Below are positions 1 through 51,030 of a stretch of 51,040 bases of DNA, piece after piece (positions within the stretch are counted from its first letter, which is position 1; each line of letters opens with the position of its first letter). Source of the DNA: Chlorokybus atmophyticus (Eukaryota > Plantae > Mesostigma and Chlorokybus algae); NCBI GenBank assembly GCA_009103225.1, contig RHPI01001202.1, positions 1 to 51,040 of the forward strand, in the 5' to 3' direction. The notes under the pieces were generated by a model, which ran no database searches, had not been told where the DNA came from, and worked only from the letters and a program-made list of their open reading frames with translations. The position numbers were made by a program, and so were the translations under genes.

Positions 1-46
1 CACTCACAGCATGCCAAACAGCAACATGCAAGCACATTACAACACA

Positions 47-390
47 ACCACCGGGCTATACACACTGTTTGTTCCTCACTACACTACACTAGTCTAGCTC
101 CCCGTTAGACATGCATACATGCGTATTAGTAACGCATTACCTGCCCGCACGGGCTCTGTCAGTTGGTGTCGGCAAAGGCAGCAGCAGCAGCAGCAGCACA
201 GCATGACGACTTCCTCCCTTCCGCCTGCTCTCCCTCCCCCCGCCACCCACTCTGCCACGCAGTTTCTGCTGTTGCGTCTCTCACTACCCTAGCCCTTCTC
301 GCGCAGTGCCGACGTCAGCACTGCCGCATGCAGGGCCACTTTGTCACTGGCGGTCAGGTCTGGTCGGTAGGGTTGGGTGGTGGGGTTGGC
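47..390 (+). repeat. Dispersed repeat, long copy of the two-box family (ACCACCGGGCTA...CCCCGTTAG); homologous to 49910-50282 (-)
   Basis: ACCACCGGGCTA at 47-58 and CCCCGTTAG at 100-108. The downstream sequence aligns with the reverse complement of 49910-50282; conceptual translations are TTLALLAQCRRQHC..SVGLGGGVG versus TTPTLTVQCKRQHC..SVGLGGGIG. Confidence 0.8.
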
Positions 391-409
391 TGGGTTTGTC
401 TGTCGCACG

Positions 410-1371: not shown

Positions 1372-2910
1372 TTACCTCTGCTGCTGGAACCTCCTATGTA
1401 TCACATGATACAAGAACTTGTACGTCGCACCGAAGATGATGCCTTCTTGTCTTGACATCCACCTACACAACACTCCCAACAAATCTTGTGCGTTATAACC
1501 CCCTGCTGTCATGGCAGTCCAAAGTGCCAGCATGTCATGCAGCAAGTGCTCCCTGTATGTGGACAAGCGTAAGAAACGAATGCATTTAGATATGATCACC
1601 CCCATCTTAGCGGAGGCAGCAATGTCGATGTTGGGGTGTGGTGCACGTCTGCAAGGGATTGCAGCAAACTGCGGCAATGTTAGTTTGCTATAAATCTGCG
1701 TGCAAAGTCCTACATCCATGGTCTAAAACAGAGTGATCTTTAAGAAAGGCACGGAGACCCTTAAAGCCAACTCGGTTAGTGTTAGACTTTGCTCAAGATA
1801 CCACCAACTACTGCATCTGTAGACTGGTACATGAAACTTAAAAACTCTGCAATGTCAACAACAAGCAAGTCGTCGACGTATCTTATCACTCTGGACGCTA
1901 GCTTGGCCATTTAGTCCGGCCTGTTGCAGTCATTGAGCTTGCATAGGAACTTGAGCTCCAAGTATCCCAGGTGGTAGTTCGCAAGATATACTCCGGCATT
2001 GCTTCCCATAACATTGCCTATGGTCTGCGTGTGCAACTCATCTTGTGCTGTCTGCACGTATTGGTTAGCAACAAGATATACTAGCATGGTATGCATCATG
2101 TCTTTTGTGAAAATGCGGTGTCTGTCTTCACCAAGTTGTGCTCTGTCTTATCCGCAGCCCCACACGTACGTGGTTACACGATTGTGCAAAATCACATACA
2201 AAGTATCTGCTCTGCGCATGCGGCGTACACAATCAAATAGTTCTTCCATAAGAGCATGCATCCCCGTGATCAAGTCATCATGGCGGATGTTGGTGTAGAG
2301 TGTAGCAAAGTCCGAAGTTTTCAACGACATGCAAGTTTGCTTATCTTGTGAAATACGGGTAGTGTTGCAGTGCTGTACCACGTATAACACTCCCATTCAT
2401 TCCATGAGGACCAACTGCTGTGTTGCTCACGCACCTGCACGCACTCAGACCACAACGCAGTGAATGTGGGCATGAGACTTTTGTATGCACATATGTGCAT
2501 ATGGGTGTGAGAGCACACTGAGGTAGGCAGGACACAACCCGGGTTGTTATGTTGGGAGGCGATCATTGCTCATAAGACGCAGCCGAGTAAAGGCATGGCA
2601 TGCATATATCCAACAGATTGCATGCTACTTTGAAGTGGATGCCATTTCTTTTATACTGAGATTGTGTTAGGCATGAGTAGCGCTACGCCTTTGACATTTA
2701 GACCTTGTGAAGTTCACCATGACGTATAGACAGAGATGGTGCTATTGCTGATGCAGCCGCTGACCACGGAGGTGGACATTGCGCTGGCGGCAGCGGTTTG
2801 AAGACGACACGCGCGGATGTGTAGGGTATAGACCGTCGTATTTCGTGCACACACATGCGCGCACAGACAGGATGCACACCAAAGCAAGCAGAGCAGGCAA
2901 CAAACAAGGG
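1372..2910 (-). mobile_element. Decayed Penelope-like retroelement, RT domain (element 1)
   Basis: Ordered RT motifs broken by stops and frameshifts: IAS..AYKSLMP, SDFATLYTNIRHDDL (motif A), QTIGNVMGSNAGVYLANY (motif B), RYVDD at 1868-1882, VPFLKITL and thumb LCTQIYSK..PHP..RFLRLS..GY. No endonuclease seen downstream. Confidence 0.88.
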
Positions 2911-20493: not shown

Positions 20494-20567
20494 ATCTTAA
20501 AAGCATGCATACTGCAGACGGGCATGATTTGATACATGCCCGTCTGCAGCATGCATGCTTTTAAGAT
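20494..20567. repeat. Near-perfect inverted repeat (33 bp arms, 8 nt loop, 1 mismatch)
   Basis: atcttaaaagcatgcatactgcagacgggcatg-atttgata-catgcccgtctgcagcatgcatgcttttaagat. Confidence 0.95.
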
Positions 20568-20640
20568 AGGTAGAAACAAGCAGTAGACATTAGCCCGGTG
20601 GTGGCATATGATCATGCCTACATGCTGTTTGTGTGTGCGC
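20568..20640 (+). repeat. Partial copy of the two-box family (box TAGCCCGGTGGT only)
   Basis: TAGCCCGGTGGT at 20591-20602. Short flank similarities to the other copies (ggcatga, caaacagca on the - strand). Confidence 0.55.
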
Positions 20641-21186
20641 GTATGTGCTTCTGCATAATGCATGTACAAAACTGCCTCGAGCATATCTTGTACAAGTGTG
20701 CACATGCACAAACAAAACCGATGTTGAACCCCCTCCCTTTGTGTGCGCAGGGTAAGGGGCAACACTACCTAGCAACTTATCGTGTTGCTCGTATACATAT
20801 CAACAATATTTCTCGAACACTTAATCGTAGGTTACGCAACAAGAACACGCAAAGTGATTTATCAATCAGCATTCACTTCATCACTCTGCAACGTATATTG
20901 TCACTACTACCGGCAGAAGTTCTCCGGTAGCGGACAGCTGGTTGACAGCCGAATTGCATGCGCTTGTCACCTGCCGCAGAAGTGAGGGTAGAGAGAAACA
21001 CCCTGCTGTCTCAATGCATAGTTGATGTGGGTGGGTGGGTCGCTTTCTCTGCAACTCACAGTTGGCCGCTTTGTCCATGTGCTGTTTTGGTATCTGTGGT
21101 CTGTACCTGCAGGCGTGTACGAACTAACATGTGCGAGTCACTCTTGATTGCAGCGGATACCAGAGACCAAAGGCCAAGCATGTCCT

Positions 21187-21374
21187 GACTGTGCTTGCTC
21201 AGCATACTGTTGTGCAGATTATGTGATGCTTTGGTGTGCTACACATGCTGCTGTTGTGGCAGAACAGCCTATTGTACCCCCCGGACTGTGCTTGCTCAGC
21301 ATACTGTTGTGCAAATTATGTGATGCTTTGGTGTGCTACACATGCTGCTGTTGTGGCAGAACAGCCTATTGTAC
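21187..21374 (+). repeat. Tandem duplication, 2 x 91 bp, one mismatch, 6 nt spacer
   Basis: 21187-21277 and 21284-21374 are identical except cagatt/caaatt; spacer cccccg. Confidence 0.95.
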
Positions 21375-35282: not shown

Positions 35283-36700
35283 TTAGATTATGCAACTGAT
35301 GAGTCTGGTAGGCCCCTGCTGCGTACTAAGTATGCAATGTGCTGCATGTGGAAATGCGCGTAGCGCATGATACCTGGGTATATCGCTGTAGGCGGGTAGA
35401 TCCCTTTTGCTGTACAATCTTGTGCAGATCCCATCCCTCGTTTGGAACACGGCCAAGTCCAAAAAGGGAAGCATGGTCCCCTGCGCTTTCTGCGTAACAG
35501 GCAGGATGTGCGGCGGGTACAAGCAGCCTCCTGACACATGTGGAGCAGTATACACCACAACCGTGATGCAGGTGATGGCGTCATGCATGCTATGTATGGC
35601 TAACGGGGCAGGCGGATAGGATAGGAGTATTATGAATAATAGACTAAGTGCTAGCCCGGTGGTGAGTTAAATAAAGAGTGTTGCGTGCATGTCGGCGTGA
35701 TTGCTAGCACACCATACATGCGGACTTTGTGGCATACCCCTTTTGTACAGCAGGTTGTCAAAGTTTGGCACGTCCGCCGCGAACACATTGTCGATATAGC
35801 GCAGCACTCCGCGTGCCATCTTGGTCAGCAGCTGAATGTTGCCTTGCAACCTCAGTCGCTGCATGAAATGTCACAGCCACATGTTGCATCCTATGGTTGA
35901 ACACGTGTGTATAGTCACAAGCATAATGCAATGGTAGTGCATGATGACTATGCTCTAGCTGCATTGGTTGCAAACGAGCTACACCCGTATGCTTGTGGGC
36001 GGGGTTCCATACGCAGTATGGCCCTTGTGGGAGAGGCACCATACACAATAAGTGCAGCATATCTTCTTTGTACAGTACGCCATGGCCATCAGCGCCGAGC
36101 AGCGGTTGTGGTAGATATGCTGGGTTGGACACCGGTAGCACAAGGCCCCCCGATATCTGAATGGGAGCGCAGCACTCGCGTAGAGTAGCCCTTGCTGGTT
36201 GGTGTGGAGTGTGCAAGTTTCAGGCACGGTGGCGCTGACGGTCAAACGCTTGCATGTGAATGTAATATTGTGACGCTTGTGAGAGGAGCACCGTACATTG
36301 TATGCCATGCCCCATGCAGTTGTTGCAAGGTGGGTTTTATTTTTCCCGCAATAAGACTGCGATATACCGTTGCTGTCAAGAGAGACATATGATAAATGGA
36401 ATGTGTATCCAGCCGTAGTTTTTATATGTAGACTTGATAATGTTGCTGTTGCAGCACCTTTTGCGATGTCGGGCGTTGGGCTCACGCAGCAGAATGGGCT
36501 GAGAACTACGGTTGTGCTGATCATGATGCGGCGATTTATTGCAAGTGACCGCTGAGATATAAGATTGATTGCACACAAACTGAGCTTGCGAATCATAAAT
36601 ACATAAGCACACAAACGGACAATGAGCGAGCTTGATGCGGTAGCAAAGATATCGCATGTAGTACATCCAGATGGAAGGGAAGATTGCCCATAGCTGAAGT
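35283..36700 (-). mobile_element. Decayed Penelope-like retroelement, RT (element 2)
   Basis: RYIDN (35787-35801), GGCLYP, LPFLDL..TRDGICTRLYSKR..FPH thumb. Weak traces upstream of the DKA..FVC, FII and QAFD motifs, so the 5' limit is approximate. Confidence 0.75.
35544..35715. mobile_element. 172 bp non-autonomous insertion carrying the two-box core, 8 bp TSD, no TIR
   Basis: Flanks ACATGTGG (35536-43) and ACATGCGG (35716-23). Removing the insert and one TSD restores in-frame RT ...QSPHVSGGCLYP. Boxes at 35600-35608 and 35652-35663. Confidence 0.75.
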
Positions 36701-37351
36701 TATAATGGTCAAGTACGCCATACTCGCTGATGTGATACGGTGTGACACTCAAACCTACAAGCGGCCATAACAGGATACGCACATTTTGCCGACTGGTTTT
36801 AATTTAACACCATAACTTATGTTATTTACCAAATGTTATGCCAAAGACACCTCAACTAACAACATGAATGCATCGATAACATCAACACAAAATGATGACC
36901 TCGATGAAGCCGTAGTCGACACAATCCATTGCATGCATGTACTCAACATGCATGTTAAGTCAAAATATCAAGAAAAATCATTTTTAAACATGCCCCATTC
37001 GCAACATTGTACAAGATATGCAATGCGCTGATGTATACGTACATAAGAGTGCAACAATGCATACAACATAACAAAACATTGCATTGCATGTCACATACAT
37101 ACATACGGTATGTAATGCGTTGTACATCTTATGTACACTCACCTCTATCTACATATATGGTCATGCATGCCACCTTGCTCACTTTCTGCATATAATGCTT
37201 GGTTGCCTGACATTCACCCGATGTTATAAGGGTTTACGTTAAGTCTTAATGACTGTGACACTGTGCTTCGTAAGCCCTAGCGACTGCAATGCTAATAATT
37301 GGCGATGGGTTTGGGGTGTAGAGTCGCGGGTGGAGCGGGCGCTAGCACCAC

Positions 37352-37537
37352 GCTACACTATCCGTGCCATCTCCTTGCTACCCGTTGCATTTGCACGCAC
37401 GCACATATGATAGTGGCTAAGCTAGTTGGTTGGCTAACAAACTTCACCCCCCGGTCAAAACTGCTGGTTGTCGTTGTCATGTGCATGATTGACTCGCTGG
37501 TTGTTTGTGCATGTTACCTCGTATCGTATGCATCTTA
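37352..37537 (+). repeat. 5' direct terminal repeat (pseudo-LTR) of element 3
   Basis: Aligns with 42660-42831 through gctacactatcc, catctccttgctaccc, catttgcacgcacgcaca, acttcacccc.cggtca and ttgactcgctggttgtttgtgcatg. Confidence 0.9.
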
Positions 37538-39457
37538 GCACCGGGTCCTACTCATATTAGGGGTGAGCTATCACTAGGCCGTCACTCTATATCCCGCTGG
37601 TGCGGGCTAGTGGTGCAACGTTGCAACGGGCAGCACACCCTAGCCACGGTTGTTAAGGTTTTCTTTGCCAAATTGTGTTGTAATACTGGGGGGCCTAATT
37701 CTTGTTTGGCATCGGCATCGAGCAGCCTAAGCATTGCATTGCACTTGCACACAACCACCATGGATTGGGGTGGCGTGAAGGCACAAGTATGTAGGGCGCA
37801 CTACCAACTAGCTGCCCGTCCTTCAGCACATACAACACAAACGGCAAGCGACCTTGCACACATGCCGCTCAGTCCTGTACGTACGACTCATGTTATCTGC
37901 TGCATCTATTATCAATTGTATGCGTCCAAGATGGCATATGTGGGACCGACCAAACATATTGCCTATGAGCGTTTCAAGGAACATTACGAGCTTGGTATTG
38001 CCACGAATGCCACGCCGCTGGACTAGTAAAGGCATCCATCAATAGGCGGTATCTCCACTTGAGTGGGTTGACAATGCGGGCCTGTTTAATGCTGACAGGT
38101 TTAATCTTGCTAGACAGCGAGCGAGAGTGGATTGGCATCCTACGCACCTATAGCCCCTATAGTTACAATCAAGAGCGCAAGGGTGCAATCCGACACAAGC
38201 AACCACACAACCATGCATTGGTTGAGGTCCGAGCACTTGCAGCACATGAATATGCACCTGCACCTGTGCCTCCACCTGTCTGCAGACCACACCGCACCGA
38301 ATATGCATATCATGGTTACAAGCGCCGTCTTAGGCACTTTGGAGAGTTGATGCGCTCTGGTGCATCTCATGCCAAAATGCTTGCCGCCAGCAAGCACCGT
38401 GATTTTTTCAGAATGCTGAATTAGTTGAAGCGTTGTACAGCTAAGGAAATTGGGCTAGACCAACGACACGCAGAAGCATTGCTGGGTGTGCTCATGAAGG
38501 CAGCGGCTAAAGGATAGCTAGTCCCTCAGGGTCCCGCAGGCTGCTATCACCAACAATCAACTGTTGGTGAAGTGTCGCTTTATGGGTTTGTTTACTGACT
38601 TTCTGAATGTGCTGAGTAGGGCTGAAGTGCTAGAGGCTGTGCCACACCATGTCCGCCAAGGTTGGAAAACTCCATTGGTAGTATGAAAATATCGGGAAAA
38701 CGTTACGAAGGTTGTGCTGTAACAGGTCACCCATGGTAACATCTACACTAGCTGATGTCTTGCTTGCATACCCTTAAAACCCGTGTGTATGCATGACCCA
38801 GCTTGGCAAGAATGGGTGAATCGTGAGCTGCTGCATGTGGTGACTTGTGATGTGCGACTGACACCGAATGTGGCGTTGCAAGAGCTGCTATGCTGAGGGG
38901 TGCATACAGGCCGCAAGCACTTACGACACCAGAGGCATGGGTGACTCCGGTTATCAAGGCACTACGTTGATATGCAGAGATCTATGAGGTAAAGCACAAC
39001 ATGCTTGTGGGTTCGAAGCAAACGTGGGTCACAACAGCTGTTAGGTACTTGCGTGACAACATGCATGCACTCAGCGTGGATGTGTACCCGGATCTATGTT
39101 TCTCTGCGGCTGAACATGCTGCACTCAGTAAGTTGCAGAGCAAAGTTGTCGTCATATAGGTGGACAAAGCCGCATGCACATTTGCTTTTGTGTGCATCAA
39201 GTTGTATGCAAGCACGCTATTGGCTGAGTTGGCAACACCTACTTACACTCTTGCACAAAACACTACACAGGGAATTGTGGCAGCATACAGGGCTTTCCAC
39301 GACGCACACAACTTCAAAACTACTGTCACACAAGCTGCACAACCTCGACTGCCACACCTACACTTGACGGCAAAGCTTTACAAGTCACCTTCCAAACTGC
39401 GTTTCATTGCAGCTGCTTTTCAACAACTCTGTCGGATGTGTCAATTTCTCTGCCTAG

Positions 39458-39929
39458 ACCTGTGTTTTTCCCCAGACGGAAGTCAACTTCCTTTACAAAA
39501 GCTTTCGAAATGTTCTGAAAAGCGCTCATGACCAGTCTTTCCCTTCATTTGCCTATGGAACTTTCCGTTCGCTGACGGAAGCGTTGGTGGGCTATCCACG
39601 GAAGGTTTCAAGCTTGATATCATTGACTCTTATTAAAAATGTCATTATTATATTGGTTAGATATATTTATGTATACATATGAGATGATGTAAATGTTGAT
39701 AGAAATCATATGAGATGCTTATGCTAAGGTTTGACATGCATGTTGCTTGCTTATATGACACATTTTCGTGAACTTCCGTACTGTTATGGTCAATTAAGGC
39801 AATTTCGGAAGGCATCAGACTTATATAAGCATAAAAGCGTTGGACTTTCGTCATTTTCGAGAATTTTCCCTTCCCGAGCGGAAGTAACAGGAACCATCGA
39901 GGAGATTAAATCCACGGAATAACCCAGGT
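39458..39929. mobile_element. MITE-like 472 bp AT-rich insertion in the RT of element 3
   Basis: Imperfect 14 bp TIR (ACCTGTGTTTTTCC / GGAATAACCCAGGT, 12/14) and six CGGAAG/CTTCCG motifs. Interrupts the RT between RFIAA and AYKACMP. TSD unclear. Confidence 0.6.
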
Positions 39930-40444
39930 TTGACTTTGGCACAAGCATACAAAGCATGCATGCCGGTTATTGAAGTTTATGGAGTTGGGTGACAGGTGAT
40001 GGCACCATGCAGTCCTGAGTCTGAGGGACTCTGCGGGGTTCCAAAGGCTACAACGGTTTTACAACACCACACGAGATGCGCAACAAAAGCATGAGTACCT
40101 GGGGATGCAAACCCTCAACTTTGCAATGCTGTATACTAACATTTTGCATGAAGACTTGCTCCATAACATGCGCTTTGTGGTTGATGAAGTGTTTGCGTAC
40201 CAGCATGCTGTGAACAGGCACTCGTACTTGCATCAGACACTGATCAGTGGCAAAACAGAGGCTCCATAGTGGCCAGGACCGAGACCACTTGATGCGGGGA
40301 CACATGTCTTTACTACGTACGTGCACAATTGTTTGGCATTTGTGTGTGATAACCTCTTTGAGCAGACATCCTCTCACACTGCACACAGGCAGTTCATAGG
40401 CATTCCGATGGGCAACGCTGCAGGTGTACACTTGGATTCAAACA

Positions 40445-41858
40445 TGTAATGCCAATTGATGTGAAATAGGCTAAGAAGGGCTTATGAAGCATTAATAAGC
40501 AATATAACAACCTCTCGTGATAGCGAATTTTGCTACCATGGCCTGGTCGGCCAAGCCCCGCGTTACATTGGTAGTCGGATCTTATTGCTGAAGGTCGTGG
40601 AATCTAGCCCCACCGAGCGCGAAACAATTGCGCGTGAGTTGGTTTCGCGACCGTTGAAAACGATCCAAGACAGTTAGTTGGATTAGTTACAAATCTAACT
40701 GTGAGGTTAAGTCGACTAAGTCGGCGCGCAGAGGGTCGCTCCTGCGCGACAACGTGGCAAGTCGCCGTGGTCACGCCCAAAGGGCTGGCAAAAGTCACTC
40801 TCAGTTCCTTACTTATGTGGTAAGTAAGAGGGACCAAATGAGGATTCCGCATGCCATGGTGTGTGGCACTTGGCATGTGTGCTTATGCGGTCAATCCTTG
40901 TCTACTTAGTAGCTAGGGCTATGCATCTGCACAAGGCTGTATATTAGCAAGCACATGGCTGATCGGTGCCATATGCTCCGCATGACTTGTGGAGTGCTAG
41001 TGCTGTGACGCTGAGGCAGCATACGTGTTGCAAGTCGCAAGTCAGTCGTGCGATTTGCCAGTCCGATGTGTTTGGACAAGCACAAGACGGATTTTGGCAG
41101 TTCACAAATCCGAGGTTGACTTTTCCTGTGTTTGACAATCTCGTGATCTGATAATCCCGAGGTTAATGTCCTATGATGGGACAGGTCCTTTGTTGAACAC
41201 AGTCAGCATGTGCTGCTAGGTCAGCACACAGTGACAAGGCTTTGGGCCTTTGACATCTTGTGTGCCAGGTCGGGAGAGCGGCAAGTGGTATATATGCTCA
41301 GTAGCAACCTTGAGTAGGGATCAGAGTGTGTTCACCACTCGAGGGCCACTTGTGTGTGGGGTGCCTGGTTGTAGCTGTTGAAGGGGCTCTCCCCCTCATC
41401 CCTTGTTGGGTGTGAGTGCGCGGCGTTGGTGACTATACTTGTGTGTGGGAGCTGTTGGAGGGCTGGCGGTCATCCTCTCCTACCCGGCTCTGATGCTGTG
41501 TCTCCCCTCCGCGAGGTGCTGCACCGGGGTGTGTTGTGCATAAGCTCTTTGTGCTTGTGCACAAGGTGGTGAGGCTCACTAGCAGGTAAGTGAGTGGTAT
41601 CATTACAGCCGTGGAAAACTACGCGGCAAGACCGGTAATGGCTGGTCATGATCGGACGCGACCTAGCCTTGCCGTCTGGTCGGAGCGACCAACCAAGATG
41701 TGCAGGTAATATCGCGGTCGAAGTCGGGTTGAATGTAATGCCGGTTAATGTGAAGTAGTAGGCTAAAAAGGGCTGATGAAGCATGAATAAGCCATACACA
41801 ACCTCTCATGGTAGCGACTTTTGCTACCATGGCCTAGTCGGCCAAGCCCCGCATTATA
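40445..41858 (+). mobile_element. Small non-autonomous LTR retroelement (TRIM-like), LTRs 40445-40567 and 41734-41858
   Basis: Both repeats start TGTAATGC and end GCRTTAYA (inverted termini, TG...CA). 5 bp TSD AAACA/ATACA. TGG-starting PBS-like sequence at 40569. Splits RT motif B of the host element. Confidence 0.82.
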
Positions 41859-42659
41859 ATACATTCGCTAGGTTTTGAGTTGAGGTGGCTGCGCCGCTTG
41901 CAGCCCCTGGTTGACAGGCCCATTCTATTGCGGTATGCTTGCAGCATCCTCAGATTTGTGGATGACCTCGTGGTGGTAAACGTGCATTATTTTAAGTTAT
42001 AATTGTATCTTGCTGATGGTGCTCTGGCTGGTGGCTTATATCCACAAGCTTCGCTCACGTTGGCTTGAACAAAAACATGTGTCACAGTGCCTTACCTAGA
42101 CCTCACCATTTGTTAGACAAGGGATGTTGGCATCTGCACAAGAATGTACAAGAAGCTCAAACAACCGGTGTTTGCGGACATACCCGTGCAAAGAGGACCA
42201 CACCCAATATCCGATGTGGCCAAGTCAGCCAAGCTCAACATTGTTGTGTTTTAGGCACATCGCTAAATGCGCATCACCACGTACAGGGCACACTTTATTG
42301 ATGACCTTGTGACATTGATTAAAGCTCTGATCGCTGCAGGCTATAGCCAGCGCCGCTTGACTTCACGCTTACAACGGTCTTTGGTAATAAGCATTGGTAT
42401 GAATGCTCCGGTTTGTATTTGTTTTGGCTGGTGTGCAGGGGGTTGCATGATGGTGTGGGCAGACAACAACGCTGAGCACCACCCAAAAACACACGGGTTA
42501 GTACCATCATTGACAACAACAAGTAATGTAAAGGTAAGTTGTGGTAACTTTGTGCGGGGAGCACGTTGTGCCCGCACAGGCAAAGTCAGGTCAGGCACGC
42601 CCTGTGACCACGGCACTTACCACCCTTTCCCTTTCCTTCCCCTTCGGCTGCTGCAAGTT

Positions 42660-42831
42660 GCTACACTATCCCTGTCATCTCCTTGCTACCCACTACATTT
42701 GCACGCACGCACACAGGATAGTGGCTGAGCTAGTTGGCTTACAGACTTCACCCCCCGGTCAGAATTGTTGGTTGTCATGTGTATCATTGACTCGCTGGTT
42801 GTTTGTGCATGGTACCATATCGTATACATTA
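42660..42831 (+). repeat. 3' direct terminal repeat (pseudo-LTR) of element 3
   Basis: Homologous to 37352-37537. Confidence 0.9.
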
Positions 42832-43469
42832 CAGGGTTCACTCCAACCCTACCCTCTTGCCCCCCTTATTCGTCATGCATGCATTCACTGCAGCTTTGTT
42901 ACCTGCCCATGCCCATGTGGTCAGCAGTTAGCCCATGCAACCGCAAGTCAACAACTATAACCGCAAGTCAACACGCCCCCCTCCCGCCCCCACCTCACCC
43001 TCCGTCGCCGATTGCAACCCTGATACGGCGCTGCACTAGGGTTTTGTTAGCGTTGGCATGCAGCTTAACGCACATGTGCATGTACCAGCGTACCCCTTCC
43101 ATACAACACTCTGTCAGTCGTAGAGAGTTGCAGCTGTGGCACACTGCGCGAGTACCGCATGTGCCATGACAGCAGGGACTGGGGTCAACGGCGCCCAGCC
43201 CGGCGCTGCTGCGACTGCCGCCACTCCCCGCATACTCACTGCTGCCTGCACTCACTGCAAAGCCTTCTTTAAACTGATCGTTCCCACATCACACATATAC
43301 TGGAATAATAATTGCTGCACAATTACGTAATGCAGGAATGTGAACCGCATGCCACAGGCAATTGGCCAGTCCATTGGACATGAAGGCTCACACAGACCCC
43401 GTTGCAAGCTCGGGACAACAGCGCGACACCAACACTACAGTCTTACAAGACCGACACAATATGCATGAG

Positions 43470-46400
43470 CTATGCAAGGTAGTTGTAAGTTTGTGGGTTG
43501 GTCTTATCCCTCTCAAGGTACTCGCGGTCTATCAAACTTTCAATGCGTTTCTTCAGGTCTGCGGGCTTGATAGGGAACTTAAGCTGCACAAAACAGAAGA
43601 CAACCAAAATAAGAGATTGTGCTGATTGATGCGAGGAGACCAAAACACAATCAACCACCTGCTGGAACAGTTCGGTAATCAGAAGCGTATGACTCAGCAC
43701 TTTGCGCGTCTTCATGATGCGAACAATAGCTGCGTCAATCTGCATTGCAAGAGAATTATAGCAGAATGTAACAGACATGGACAATAGCGTAACTTCAGCA
43801 TGTATGCCAGACCTGGTACTGTCGATCTTGGAACACGCGCTCTGTCGTAGCCTGATTGTCCTCAACAGTTTCCTTCAACTGGATTGCATTCACCTGTAAA
43901 GATGCACGGCAAAGTGAGCAGACACCAAGACAAGTCCAGCAATTGATGCACATCTGACTCACGCACAGATTCACTGCATACCTTGATCCTGTACAACTTC
44001 TCACTGAAGTCAGTATTGAACTCAAAGTAATCCCCATCCTCCACATCACGCCCCTTGGGATCCTAATATGGTGCACATGGGGATAGCTACTGAGCAAATG
44101 TGACAGGTGAACTGACACGCAAACGCAGATAGGGAAACATAGAGAACCTTGTGTAGTATCCTAATCTTTCCGCAAGCAAGGGACTGCAGTGTGCGCCTCA
44201 GCTCCTTGTCCTCAATGTTTGTAGCATCCCGAATCTCCGTCAGGCTTAACCGATCAGCGGAATTGAAAAGCATGAGCACAACAGTCTGTCACCACAAGGT
44301 ACCGTCAGCGAACAACGCACTTAGACCCTCCAGTGCCTCACTGATCACACAATGCATCGGCAAACTCTTGCACCACTGGCTACACCTGGAAAAGGGACAC
44401 AGAGAGCTCCTTCTTTCCTTTGGGGAAATCCGCTTTCAAAACGCAGTGCCCCAAAGAATTTTGCCACATCAACCTTCGACCGCTGTGCTTGCTAAGGTAG
44501 AAGTCCTTGAAGATGTCCTGATAGACGTTGAGTTCATGCGGCAGAGTGACTTCGAGAGGTGGGTAGGTAGGCCAGTAGCCTGTTGTAAGAACGTGCACAT
44601 TCATCTCAATTCCCTGGGGCAGCTTGGAACGCGCCTGTGCCGACTGCCTGAAGGATGTCATGATGTCTCTTGACAAGTCAATGTCCTTGAACATCCCCTC
44701 CAACTTGTTGGTGAACTGAGATCCACACTCTGTCTTGAGCTTAGTGATCATTGACTTTTCTGCATCGATGGAGGCACTCTTTCCCAGCAGCAGTCGCTTA
44801 GCAAGGTCTTTCTTATAGAAAGCTTCGAACACGTCCTTGCCCTGGATGTACCTAAACAAAATCAAGACCTTATCCAGCGTTGCTTCCAGCTCTTCCTCTG
44901 AGGTGCCTTTGTTCCCAGCTCGCAGCCTTGCATCAATAAACTTGGCAATAAGTTCTGCTGGTCGATTTTGCCTCAGGTTGATAAAGTACTCAAAGGAGTC
45001 CTTCAATGCATATCCAAACGTCTCCTGCTTTGCAAAGCTGGTCTCCAAAATCTGATCCAGTCGTGCTTTGAACTCCAACAGGCACTGCACCATGTCTCGG
45101 TCCTTCTCTTCGTCCACGACAAGTGCTGAACCTGTTTTCTTTACATACGCCCCAATGGCTAACCGCAGCGGCTCATGCGCACCAACCCGCCCAAACAAGC
45201 TGTACATGCGGCCAAGATCGGCCAAGCGGTTGCCATCCATGAGAGTGCTCAAGCCCTGCATATGCAACAGTCTATTCATAAACCTTTGAGAGCTACTCAT
45301 GCTCCAACACCAGGGGAATAATGGCACCTGCAACAGTGCACACCACCCATACCAACCTTGTCAATGATAGTTGCTGTGTGTTGCTCCAGCAGCTGCTTCT
45401 CGACGACTGTTATAAGGGGTTTGCGCGTGCTACTATCCAAGTAATTTATACACCTATCATGCTCCTCTTGCAGCCGAATCTGTGGATTACCAGAAGCATC
45501 AGCACAATGGTTGGTCAACAGTGCTTGCCATACACAATGTTCTCATGCAATGCTTACCTCGCAGTGCTTCATATAGTCCGGAACATCCGCTTGTTGCATA
45601 AAACGCGTGCCTTCAGCAGCATAGAACGCACTCGTCTCATCCAGAAAAACCCTTTCAAAACTGCATGCACGTACAGTCAGCTGGGGTGCACAGAGAAGTG
45701 CACCTTGTCCACAAATGCAACTGATTGCACCTGTCACTGTAGATCCCCAGGGCTGAGAACATCCTCAACAAGTTCTTCAGCAGTGAGCGATCCACTGTTT
45801 CCCCTTGCCTGTTGACATAATCTAAGCGCAACTGCTTTGCGAAGGCTGGCAAACAAAAAAAGGAACAGCGAAGCTTGGCACACAAGTTAAGGATTGCGCT
45901 TACCTTTCACGCTCGATCAGCCTTAGCAGCCCCACAACTGTTTTCTTCTTGACTTCGGGGCACTCACCCAAGTACCTGCTGAAGAGCTGAAGTCCCATAT
46001 CCCTGCATTCACAATTTCAGAAGGGACGCGCAATTCAACACACCAGCTGACCAGCAGCTGAGCCCATTGTTCACTATTGCTCAGCTTGCTAACGCACCAT
46101 AGAGACCGCACTCCTGTGGTCTGAATTACATATGTACGGTCCAGATAGAGGAATATGCTACGAATCGTGAGCTGCCACAACCACCGTCCATAAGTAGAGC
46201 GACAATGTTCTCTTTGCTTGCACACCAAGCACCACCAGTTCAGTGCCACACAACCAGCGTACCATTTGGTCGCAGTGATCTTGCCACCGATCCTGCACAT
46301 GGTTCAAGAATATGACAGGATCTGGTATCTGCGTGTGATGCAGTCAAGGCAAACCTACTACTTCGCTCGCAGCAAATGCCATGCAGCATGCAGCATGCAA

Positions 46401-47518
46401 CGTTTAAACCAATCAGAAGAACACAGCGGTTGTATGGATATCCTAACAACCCGTAGAGTTGAGCTCGTATATGCTCCGCGCATTCGCTCTGTAGCCTTGT
46501 GTACAAATTGTCCGCCATCTTGTGCACGCAAAGGTCTTCAACTGCCTGAAACATATCAGCGTCGCTAACAATGCAACACTAGCCGCTAGCACTGAGAGTG
46601 ACAGTATGCAACGGTGGCAGCCCTTACCCGGTACAACTCTTCCAGGCTACATGACACTGGTTGCTTCCGATGAACAGCATTCACAGCGTTTTGCAACTTG
46701 GCCCATGTAGCTGCCTCAAAGTTCACAGGCAGCTTTGGTTTTGCTGGAAAAAGCACAACCATTAGTACATCAGCAGCGTCAAACTAACCTGCGAGCCTGT
46801 GCAACTAACCACACCCCAACCGCAGCACGACGCTTACCAGCATGACCAGTAAGTACATACGTGTGATGTTGGCAAGTACTAAGCTATTGACCGTCAACCT
46901 GTCCTAAACCAGTTTAATGCACTGTACTGCAGGTTTCGCCATGATGGTAGCATGCCTTGCTCAGACGCCCTACGACCCTATGCACTAACTGAATCATGCA
47001 GCGACAGAGGCATTGAAGCCGTGAGCGCCCATGTGATCGTACGAACAGAGTAACCTCAACGTCATGCTCGACGTGTGCTTGAACAGTGGAAAACAACAGA
47101 AGCTTGCGACACAATGTCCGCATGTGCATGCCAGTAGCAGCAAATGCATGCTATCTACCGGCAACTTGCAACCCTACACTTAGCAAGGTAAGGTACCTTT
47201 GAAATTGATCACAAGTTTCTTTGGTGCAGGTGGCGTAGCCTTCTTCCTGGTGAGGTTGGCTGCGGTGGTGGTGGCAGTGGCGGTAGTTGCGGCATCAGCG
47301 TACCCATCGTTGTTGGGGGTGCCACAATCCATGGGCGCAGGAGGATCCAGCACATGATGAATTTCCATGGTGTTGGCGCTGGCCTGCTCCTTCGCCCCTG
47401 CCCCTCCCTTGGATCGCTTGTTGCTGGGCGCCTGCGCCTGGGCCTGACCTCCTCCTCCTCCTCCCGCAGCCCCTGCTCGCTTCCTGGAAGCTGCTGTCGC
47501 CGCCACCGGCGTCGTCAT
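43470..47518 (-). CDS. CUL4: Cullin 4, multi-exon
   Basis: [141 protein letters not shown] and neddylation-domain C-terminus [17 protein letters not shown]...YNYLA. Confidence 0.97.
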
Positions 47519-47919: not shown

Positions 47920-49510
47920 ATGGTGGGGGCGGCGAGGTCCACCAAGAGGAGGCTGCTCTCGCTGCTGGCAACAGGGGCGGCGTTGCTTCTGCTGTGGGGC
48001 ATGTGGGCGAGCCAGTTGGCACTGACGCCGTTGACGGAGCACAATGCGGCATTGTTGGCTCTGCAAGACACGACTGTCTTCCCACCAACGGTCTTGTCAA
48101 TCCCTTCTACACCTCCTGCTCCACCCACTACACCTCTGCAGCCAGGCCGCTGGTTGCAGTGGACGCCGCGAGCAGAAGAGCTGATTCTTGGATATGTAGG
48201 AAGCATGCAGTTCCCGCACACATGCGATGACCAGCGCGTGCTGTTCTTGACTCCTAGGGAGAAGGTGAGCTGCCAGTTGCAGTTGTTCATCAAGGTTTGA
48301 CGTGTTGTACTAATTCAGTTTGTCCTTGTCCTGTCTGTTGCTTTTGGAAGCTGCTATGGTGCTTGATGCAGGCAATGCATGTGTGCATGTGGTGTAGTAC
48401 TCAACATGTCCACTGTATTGGCAGGGATTCTTTTCTACCCTGCATTCCTTTGAGATGGCGCTGGTCGCTGCCATGCATCTCAACCGCACACTGGTGCCGC
48501 TGCCCAACCCGGACAAGCTGTCCATGCAAGGGTTGGAGCAGAACGGGCACGGCGGGTACAGCCTGTGGGCCAGCCACATCGTGTCTCCCACATGCGTAAA
48601 ACACCTCGAGCAGTTCACGCTCTCTGCAAACGGCCTGAATGTCATGGATGTCCCGCACGCTTGTGGGAACTTCACGGATGCCGCCAGCCCCATCTCGCAC
48701 GAGCCAGGCAAGTATGTCCAGTACTGCAGCGGTGGCAAATGGGAGGTGCCTTGGTGCCGAGTACCTGTCACTGAGTGTTGCACCAAAGTCAACCTTCTGG
48801 ACTCGCATTTCTCCTTGCGTGGCTTTCCTGACTGGCTGTGGAGCGAGCTGCTGGCAGAAGGTGCCGTCGTGCTGCCTCTGAATAAAGCTGTTCATCCTTT
48901 GGAGCAGCAGTTTATGCTGCATGCCATCATCGGCAAGTGGTTGTTCGACAAAGCCGTCAGCAATAAGGAAGTGCTTCACTTTGTGCAGACGTTGCCAGCC
49001 AGTTCTTTGATGCTCGGTGTTCAAGTCCGCCGCTCAGACAAGAAGCACGAAGACCCGTACTGGAAGCTTCACCGCCAGTACCGGCCTGTCGCTGACTACT
49101 TCAAAGCCGTGTTGGAGACCACACCTGGCAATGGACTGCCAAAGTGTCCGGAAGCAGTTTTTCTCATATCAGATGATCCGCAAGTCCTCAGCTTTGCCAA
49201 GCTGGAACAAGCAGCACGCAAGGCTCGTGAAGCTGGCAAGGCTGATGAGCTCTGCTTCGCAAATCTATACTCAGACACGGCTGCCACAGCTATGTCGGAG
49301 TCCAGGGCGATGAGGAACCTGCCAGATGAAGTCAACCGCATGCTTGCTGGTGTTCGGACAATGGTCACCCGCGTTGACTACGCTGTTGTTACAGCATCCT
49401 CCAACATTGGTAGGTTTATTTTTGAGTATCTTGGGGCTAGAGTGCGCATTGCTCAGGTCGTTTCGCAAGGGCCGTTGGGAGTGCTACTGGATGGCCACTG
49501 GCACATGTGA
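47920..49510 (+). CDS. Type II membrane fucosyltransferase-like protein (GT23, FUT8/NodZ-like), two exons
   Basis: N-terminal TM anchor and Pro-rich stem, GFFS.LH, LGVQVRRSDKKHE, VFLISDDP and VDYAVVTASSNIGRFIFE, matching the three conserved alpha-1,6/alpha-1,2-fucosyltransferase motifs. Intron about 48266-48423. Confidence 0.7.
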
Positions 49511-49909
49511 GTATGCAGCTTGTGTACGCATCCATGTAGCACCTGAGTGCATATTGTTCCAGGTGTGTAGGTAAAACATTGTGATAAACTATGTTGTAGA
49601 ACAGCACATACAAATGGTCCTGCTGTCGTTTGTTGCCGGTCAGCCATTGGGTAGTGTCCCTTGGGTAGTGGCAAATGTGGCATTGCATGGCCAAGTGGAG
49701 GCTGCAATGCAGGTGCTTGAGCTGCTTCTGCTTCACCTATGCCACCAAACATCATGCATCATCTAGCATTGTGCAAACGACACTTCTGTGGGGGGCTGCA
49801 TGTCATGTTGCAATACGACTTGTGTTGGTGGTGCACGTAGTCCACACAGACACAAAAGTAGTACATAAGCTCAGACCAGCCGCATATTTTTGATGCTTGT
49901 AGGCTAGCC

Positions 49910-50282
49910 GCACCAATCCCACCACCCAACCCCACCGACAGCACATAGCTGCCAGCTGCGATGCAGTGGTCCTGCGCGATGCAGTGCTGACGTTTGCACT
50001 GGACAGTGAGGGTTGGGGTAGTGAGGGAGAGCAAAGTACCGATGACTCTGCAGAAGAGTGTGGCGGGGAAGAGCGGGAGAGAGGCAAGCAGAGAGAGGCA
50101 GAGGGAGTCGTCGTCATTGCTGCTGCCATCCTTGCCATCTTTGCCATTGTCGATACCAACTAAGTGTGAGACCGTATGGGCGGGTGAATACTTTGCAATG
50201 TGCATGCTGGTGTGAACTAACGGGGTAGGGGTTAGTGTGTTGGGTAGAGTTAGGAGTTAGGAGTTAGGAGCAGCCCGGTGGT
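49910..50282 (-). repeat. Dispersed repeat, long copy of the two-box family
   Basis: CTAACGGGG at 50217-25 and CAGCCCGGTGGT at 50271-82 on +. The reverse complement aligns to 47-390. Confidence 0.8.
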
Positions 50283-51030
50283 ATGAAACATCTTCATGCC
50301 AAGGCATGTGCCGTGTGTTAGATGTGATGCAGGACATTGCATGCGTTTGACACTATGCATGCTGTTAATCTAGCATCATATCTTTTATACACTCTTAAAC
50401 GAGGGCTTCAAGATACGAGGAGAAACCACTACTATCTACACACATGGTGTATGCGTCGAATACATAAAATAAAAGGCTATTCTATGCATGCAGCATGTGC
50501 AAGTGATGCAACTGTTGAATGTACAACTCTCGCTCTCGCTTGCTAGGCCGATGTACTGCTGAGGGGCTCCGCTCACTGCTACCGCTCTTGTATTTACTCA
50601 TTGCTTGCTTTGTGCTAGCACCGACGTGACCCATTGCCCTTAACGTCTAGACATTTGCCGCATCACACCACTTGCTGCTCGTTATCGAATCATGTAATTG
50701 TGGATGTACTTTGTTGTTGTGTTGTCTTGACACAATAATCAGTAATGCTCTGCAAATTTAAACACAGGTCTTTGCGTGTACATGACGTAGGAAAAACTTG
50801 AGGTGCCTGCAATAAAATTAGGCACAAAAGGATTATATGCAAAATTGAGAACAATGGCATGTGCGCGTCTTTTTATCGAAGGGGAATTGTTTCACACTTG
50901 TTTCGACACAAAATAAAGAGATTACGTGTGTTAGTAGGAGGCAAGTGCAGCTGTTGCACAAAGCAAGGAGAAGGGCCCGGAATGCGCAATCACACGCAAG
51001 TGCAAACTTACCATATTTTGCTGCGACAGC

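Follow-up and report, generated by a model that had tools for sequence, protein, structure and literature searches.

The question raised by this locus is what a pair of short sequence boxes, found at nearly constant spacing at several places in the same stretch of Chlorokybus DNA, belongs to and what it does. We searched both strands of the whole 51,040-nt stretch (hereafter the window) for the pattern CTAACGGGG-N35-55-AGCCCGGTGGT, that is, box 1, a spacer and box 2. The search returned three exact matches, at 47-108 (-), 35600-35663 (+) and 50217-50282 (+), with spacers of 42, 44 and 46 nt between CTAACGGGG and AGCCCGGTGGT. The two-box motif is real and strongly non-random, as 100 shuffles gave no match at all (three observed, none expected), and the sites are exactly those that an earlier note on this DNA had listed. 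The additional site with box 2 by itself, also noticed before, was found as an exact match at 20592-20602 (+). Searches with degenerate boxes in the window gave matches at chance level. Four loci in JGI metagenomes and six in GTDB genomes fitted the pattern and were apparent chance matches only, located in unrelated, mostly GC-rich DNA that lacks a C-poor spacer.

In a three-way alignment of the exact copies, all 20 of the 20 box columns are invariant, compared with 11 of 49 columns upstream and 10 of 47 in the spacer (21 of 96 outside the boxes together), and pairwise identity outside the boxes is 38-54%. The contrast between boxes and flanks is thus as strong as had been claimed. The spacers were indeed C-poor (1-4 C per 42-46 nt) and TAG-rich (3-6 TAG each), and they turned out to be copy-specific micro-tandem repeats, such as (CACTA)3 at 77-91 and (GAGTTAG)3.4 in copy 3; their description as unalignable went too far, because a partial alignment is possible between the spacers of copies 1 and 4. 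Upstream of box 1, at a distance of 27-30 nt, stands a third conserved block, GGGCRGGTRA, for which copies 1, 3 and 5 provide the only exact matches in the window; copy 2 carries ATGCAGGTGA at this position, which reads CAG/GTGA.

The boxes are embedded in a larger dispersed repeat that has five copies in the window (Table 1). Copies 1 and 3 have about 380-450 bp in common at about 72% column identity, and both reach about 250 bp further upstream than copy 2. A profile made from the copies (nhmmer) added two partial copies, at 20567-20660 (+) with E=4e-4 and at 42837-42946 (-) with E=4e-3; the second of these, on the right flank of a Penelope-like element (PLE), is colinear with positions 76-265 of copy 1 (blastn E=0.003). 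The 5' extent before box 2 depends on the copy, being about 55 nt, 116 nt or ~350 nt, and homology runs on for 46-60 nt past box 2 in four copies, with an exact 3' end defined for copy 2 only. The last 52 nt of the unit are less conserved than the boxes. The statement that the boxes stay intact while their flanks decay is contradicted by copy 5, which has lost both boxes and yet retains an exact GGGCAGGTAA, and by copy 4, which is without box 1; inserted copies therefore decay throughout, and selection must act on source elements and not on them.

Table 1. Coordinates of the repeat copies, the PLEs and the annotated host reading frame in the window
Feature	Position	Strand	Remarks
Copy 1, long form	1..405	-	Window start cuts the copy 46 nt after box 2
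Copy 1, parts	Box 2 47-57; spacer 58-99; box 1 100-108	-	Spacer with (CACTA)3 on the + strand
Copy 1, donor-like block GGGCAGGTAA	137-146	-	
Copy 2, 172-bp insertion	35544..35715	+	Box 1 35600-35608; box 2 35653-35663
Copy 3, long form	49890..50340	+	Approximate ends; box 1 50217-50225; box 2 50272-50282
Copy 3, parts	Donor-like block 50178-50187	+	Spacer includes (GAGTTAG)3.4 at 50247-50270
Copy 4, short	20537..20660	+	Box 2 exact at 20592-20602; box 1 decayed to TTTTAAG; donor absent
Copy 5, decayed	42830..43013	-	GGGCAGGTAA exact at 42899-42908; both boxes degenerate
PLE e1, RT remnants, YVDD motif	1375..2396	-	Same strand as copy 1, ~950 nt upstream of copy 1
PLE e2, RT fragment, YIDN motif	35283..35864	-	Interrupted by copy 2
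Degraded Chlamys-type PLE	37352..42845	+	Pseudo-LTRs 37352-37555 and 42660-42845
Chlamys-type PLE, parts	GIY..YVG endonuclease-like ORF 37505-38026	+	Upstream of RT remnants 40000-42728
FUT8-like gene ORF	48455-49510	+	100% identical to JGI Chlat1 protein 7241 (Chrsp58S06885)

Copy 2 is a true insertion, recent-looking, inside a dead retroelement gene. It splits the RT frame of the minus-strand PLE fragment e2, which on that strand reads ...RYIDNVFAADVPNFDNLLYKRGMPQS-PHV, insert, PHV-SGGCLYPPHILPV..., and the doubled PHV codons are the 8-bp target duplication, identical at 7 of 8 positions (ACATGTGG at 35536-35543 and ACATGCGG at 35716-35723). The RT halves on either side align with consecutive parts of the e1 RT (1375-1910), and when the 172+8 bp are deleted, the spacing in the RT becomes about 43 aa, compared with 37 aa in e1. 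Read by eye, the ends of copy 2 have no terminal inverted repeats and no A-rich tail. The unit is thus mobile, and with a target duplication but neither inverted ends nor a tail it has the look of a retroelement; this clean 172-bp insertion bears out the proposal that a mobile unit leaves short non-coding copies here. For copy 3, the sole candidate for a target duplication was a 6-mer at chance level. A MITE or another cut-and-paste DNA transposon does not fit, since the ends of copy 2, as read by eye, are not complementary.

Copies that vary in 5' extent but have the 3' part in common point to target-primed reverse transcription that stops short of the 5' end, and in that case the orientation in which the boxes had been read would be the sense strand; we infer both this strand and PLE parentage. 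Our preferred reading of the two-box motif is a conserved tail, or pseudo-LTR module, in a retroelement family of PLE type, and such systems are already known. On balance, we consider that the unit is probably, if by no great measure, the pseudo-LTR region at the 3' end of a Chlamys-type PLE lineage, or of a non-autonomous derivative, spread by target-primed reverse transcription; this judgement covers identity and propagation jointly and excludes any role of an intron. The boxes are conserved far above their flanks, and that they serve a retroelement as a cis-acting signal, as was first proposed, is the natural reading.

Chlamys elements have been curated in Chlorokybus (Craig et al. 2021, PMC8557442). 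They are often 5'-truncated, have pseudo-LTRs and tails, lack hammerheads and insert at (CA)n and (C)n targets; non-autonomous Chlamys families have 3' ends in common with autonomous ones, and the TSS and a 5'-UTR intron are located in the Chlamys pseudo-LTR (PMC8557442). In that paper we found no mention of the invariant boxes. The unit resembles Chlamys-type PLEs in its apparently 5'-truncated copies, its lack of a hammerhead, its internal short tandem repeats and the occurrence of the family in Chlorokybus, and it resembles the Chlamys pseudo-LTR and derivatives such as MRC1 of Chlamydomonas (PMC8557442) in having a target duplication without TIRs or a poly(A) tail. It differs from Chlamys-type PLEs in that neither continuity with an RT frame nor a tandem or pseudo-LTR arrangement was seen in the window.

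The source would be a Chlamys-type PLE lineage of Chlorokybus, or a non-autonomous derivative that borrows PLE enzymes, and the boxes would sit in the last ~170 nt of its unit as the best-kept blocks there. Target-primed reverse transcription would start at the 3' end, ~52 nt past box 2, and would often stop early, leaving copies with a shared 3' part and with varied 5' ends, of about 125, 172, and 430 bp or more. Sources that keep the boxes would stay expressed and be copied, and the inserted copies would decay. Transcription, processing and priming of Penelope-like elements are little understood, and the hammerhead of related elements is missing from Chlamys elements; invariant blocks that survive across diverged subfamilies would mark the bases that matter. 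For annotation, the motif would flag retroelement tails in Chlorokybus and not a host RNA gene.

How closely, then, is the unit tied to PLEs in this DNA? Three degraded PLE copies are the only RT-coding elements that we found in the window. Pfam gave no match to their ORF fragments, phmmer with the e1 ORF returned short relatives only (one with a weak RVT_1 match), and an ESM Atlas search with the endonuclease-like ORF returned nothing informative. Compared with one another, the three PLE copies showed no homology in their 3' regions. Copy 2 lies inside e2. Copy 5 directly adjoins the right pseudo-LTR, and the C-rich strand of its spacer at this junction fits the (CA)n/(C)n target preference of Chlamys elements. 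Copies 3 and 4 are beside no PLE; copy 1 lies ~950 nt past the e1 frame, and no homology links the two. By a rough estimate, chance alone would place three of the five copies near PLEs with a probability of ~0.13, so the clustering is not significant, and the tie to PLE termini that the earlier note proposed stands as one copy inside, one abutting and one ~950 nt 3' of a PLE frame, a weak association within the window. In the window, no copy was seen to run on from the reading frame of a PLE, and a direct-repeat search revealed neither tandem nor pseudo-LTR copies of the unit around any RT.

Degenerate boxes had been reported after both terminal repeats of the Chlamys-type PLE. The right-hand case stood, as it is the decayed, inverted copy 5 (the nhmmer and blastn match on the right flank given above), and catgcatgc and ttacctgccc recur after the right repeat. 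The left-hand case fell: the putative box at 37537-37547 has 3 mismatches and simply belongs to the final 15 nt of the repeat itself, and the window holds 117 matches at <=3 mismatches, compared with 116 expected. From the end of box 2 onward, copy 1 aligns in sense orientation with 39 nt of the left pseudo-LTR (37465-37503; score 30, z ~6, a score reached by 0 of 200 shuffles), a match seen for copy 1 only, among 16 comparisons, and not found by nhmmer. The left pseudo-LTR also contains, at 37426-37538 (+), a 111-nt run free of AG, the fifth longest on the strand, which starts just before GGCTAAC and ends at CTTAG/CACCGGG; the right copy has two AGs inside this run. CTTAG/CACCGGG, near the left pseudo-LTR end, is by its sequence a possible acceptor.

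We next consider what the conserved blocks of the unit do. GGGCRG/GTRA, CTAAC and YAG/CCCGGTGGT may be, in order, the donor, the branch-like site and the acceptor with the start of exon 2 of an 83-90-nt leader intron in the pseudo-LTR, an intron role that we infer tentatively from the sequence of the blocks. The donor-like sequences are CAG/GTAATG, CAG/GTGATG and CGG/GTGAAT, CTAAC is present, and the acceptor-like TAG, TAG, CAG and TAG stand before CCCGG, with the AG invariant in 4 of 4 copies and preceded by T or C; the implied intron sizes are 85, 83 and 90 nt. For comparison, we read by eye 14 introns of the cullin gene and one of the FUT8-like gene, exon by exon and without a joined gene model. 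The host introns are often 75-90 nt long, which the unit's 83-90 nt fits, and host donors are as degenerate after GT as those of the unit. At the donors of the cullin introns, at 43380-47300 (-), the bases after GT vary greatly (GTACCT, GTTCTC and GTCTGG, for example), and the branch sites are CTRAY-like. The unit also resembles the leader introns of Penelope (75 bp) and Chlamys-3_cRei (398 bp) in the order of donor, branch and acceptor and in its terminal-repeat position, its own length being 83-90 nt.

The region just before the acceptor fits less well. The AG-free run before the box-2 AG is 7, 4, 1 and 5 nt long, compared with 11-58 nt (median 32) at 15 host acceptors. CTAAC lies 48-52 nt upstream of the box-2 AG, with 6-10 AGs and no pyrimidine tract in between, and unlike in the 15 host introns compared, this branch-to-acceptor stretch is purine- and AG-rich. 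With these short AG-free runs and the AG-rich stretch, the leader intron is an attractive reading but not a secure one. Splice signals also leave the invariant GGGG and CCCGGTGGT unexplained, and at each of the four box-2 sites in the window a joined donor exon is missing, so that no spliced copy was found there. An intron on the reverse strand, where CCCCGTTAG/ follows a G-poor tract and makes a good-looking acceptor, was rejected as the main reading for want of a fixed donor and in view of the pattern of 5' truncation.

The main rival to the leader intron is that the boxes, on the 3' end of the RNA, would form a handle by which the RT/endonuclease complex of a PLE takes hold before priming, the splice-like look being coincidental. 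Such a handle could account for the invariant GGGG and CCCGGTGGT, unlike splicing, and would fit the location of the boxes within the last ~120 nt, where even the shortest mobilised copies keep them, as well as the 3' ends that non-autonomous Chlamys families share with autonomous elements (PMC8557442). In this respect the unit is like the conserved 3' tails that stringent LINE/SINE partners have in common, having a short conserved 3' module across diverged subfamilies that is present in short non-coding copies; it is unlike them in having neither a conserved stem-loop nor a terminal simple-repeat tail. Single-sequence folds of the three copies gave MFE z-scores of +0.09, -0.80 and -0.13, the alifold covariation term was 0.01, and the three predicted folds differ, so that no stable or common structure was found. 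The lack of a conserved stem-loop (z ~0, no covariation) thus counts against a handle, as does the lower conservation of the last 52 nt, which are nearest to the priming site, and consensus blocks for donor, branch and acceptor in the right order would be an unlikely coincidence. Weighing these points, we regard the handle as rather doubtful.

It is less probable still that the blocks around the hypervariable micro-repeat form an undescribed cis-module of hammerhead-less Chlamys PLEs, either a docking site for their telomerase-related RT or a target for homing by the GIY-YIG endonuclease. Deleting the Chlamys-type PLE in silico (37340-37351 / 42830-42845, with a 2-bp overlap) joins ...ACCAC to AGGGTT..., and on the other strand the rejoined site reads AACCCTGTGGTG, a 10/12 match to box 2 plus the next base (copy 5); beyond the rejoined site, the left flank shows no homology to the unit's tail. 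If the module were a homing target, it would explain elements that land in each other's tails, of which the 10/12 match at the rejoined site is a hint.

An improbable alternative, a step below the preceding one, is that the unit is an independent, SINE-like short retroposon with its own internal promoter, box 2 being a Pol III A box or a Pol II core element, in which case the link to PLEs would amount to no more than TE-rich DNA in common. In its favour, TAGCCCGGTGG agrees with the A-box consensus in 10 of 11 bases by eye, copy 2 stands as a discrete insertion of 172 bp, and copies 3 and 4 are beside no PLE. ARAGORN detected no tRNA-like structure, however, and no B box was seen by eye in the 60 nt after box 2, so that of a tRNA-type promoter the A-box-like match, noticed earlier, is all that is present. 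There was also no Rfam match to 7SL, 5S or tRNA and no A- or T-rich tail, and the long copies run 250 bp upstream of the supposed promoter.

Host genes offer another, very unlikely, explanation, in which the unit would be a regulatory module of the host (a 3'-UTR, polyadenylation or termination element) that selection keeps, locus by locus, at the 3' ends of genes. Copies 3, 4 and 5 each start ~390-460 nt past a host stop codon and on the strand of the gene, the stops being those of the FUT8-like (49510; copy 3 starts ~390 nt past it), TMEM87-like (20103) and cullin (~43470) genes. The full identity of the FUT8-like ORF to JGI Chlat1 protein 7241 marks the window as nuclear DNA of Chlorokybus atmophyticus. 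A preference for the 3' ends of genes could lie behind the placement of these copies, or it may be chance, the probability that the orientation matches by chance at three loci being 1/8. Copy 2 lies inside a dead retroelement gene, the boxes are decayed in copies 4 and 5, and no conserved poly(A) signal follows box 2, all of which speak against a host module. A homologue search for a TPR gene gave no match.

Least likely is the proposal of the earlier note that a self-cleaving or structured RNA replaces the canonical PLE hammerhead: Chlamys elements do lack canonical hammerheads (PMC8557442) and the boxes could in principle pair, CGGG with CCCG, but Rfam gave no relevant match at gathering or E<=10 thresholds, the folding and covariation values given above are near zero, the spacer is a slippage-prone repeat and the possible pairs are invariant. 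The specific pairing of CCGT with ACGG that had been put forward fared no better, as it is not common to the three predicted folds, and because its bases are invariant, covariation cannot be shown for it.

The copies have some further features. The long form contains a conserved palindrome, GCAGTGC-TGACGT..-GCACTGC, at 294-335 in copy 1 and at 49979-50002 in copy 3, whose CRE-like TGACGT core precedes box 1 by ~190-230 nt; a promoter element is one possibility. The first 31 nt of copy 4 recur inverted at 20494-20524, making a near-perfect 31-bp hairpin at 20494-20567, apparently a scar of snap-back or twin priming. The intergenic DNA that follows copy 4 contains 1.9 repeats of a 97-bp unit, 98% identical to each other (21187-21374). 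Over the whole window, GCATG occurs 201 times, 4.0x the expectation from base composition, and TGCATG 92 times, 7.5x the expectation, and the repeat copies are 3-7x richer in GCATG/CATGC than the window average.
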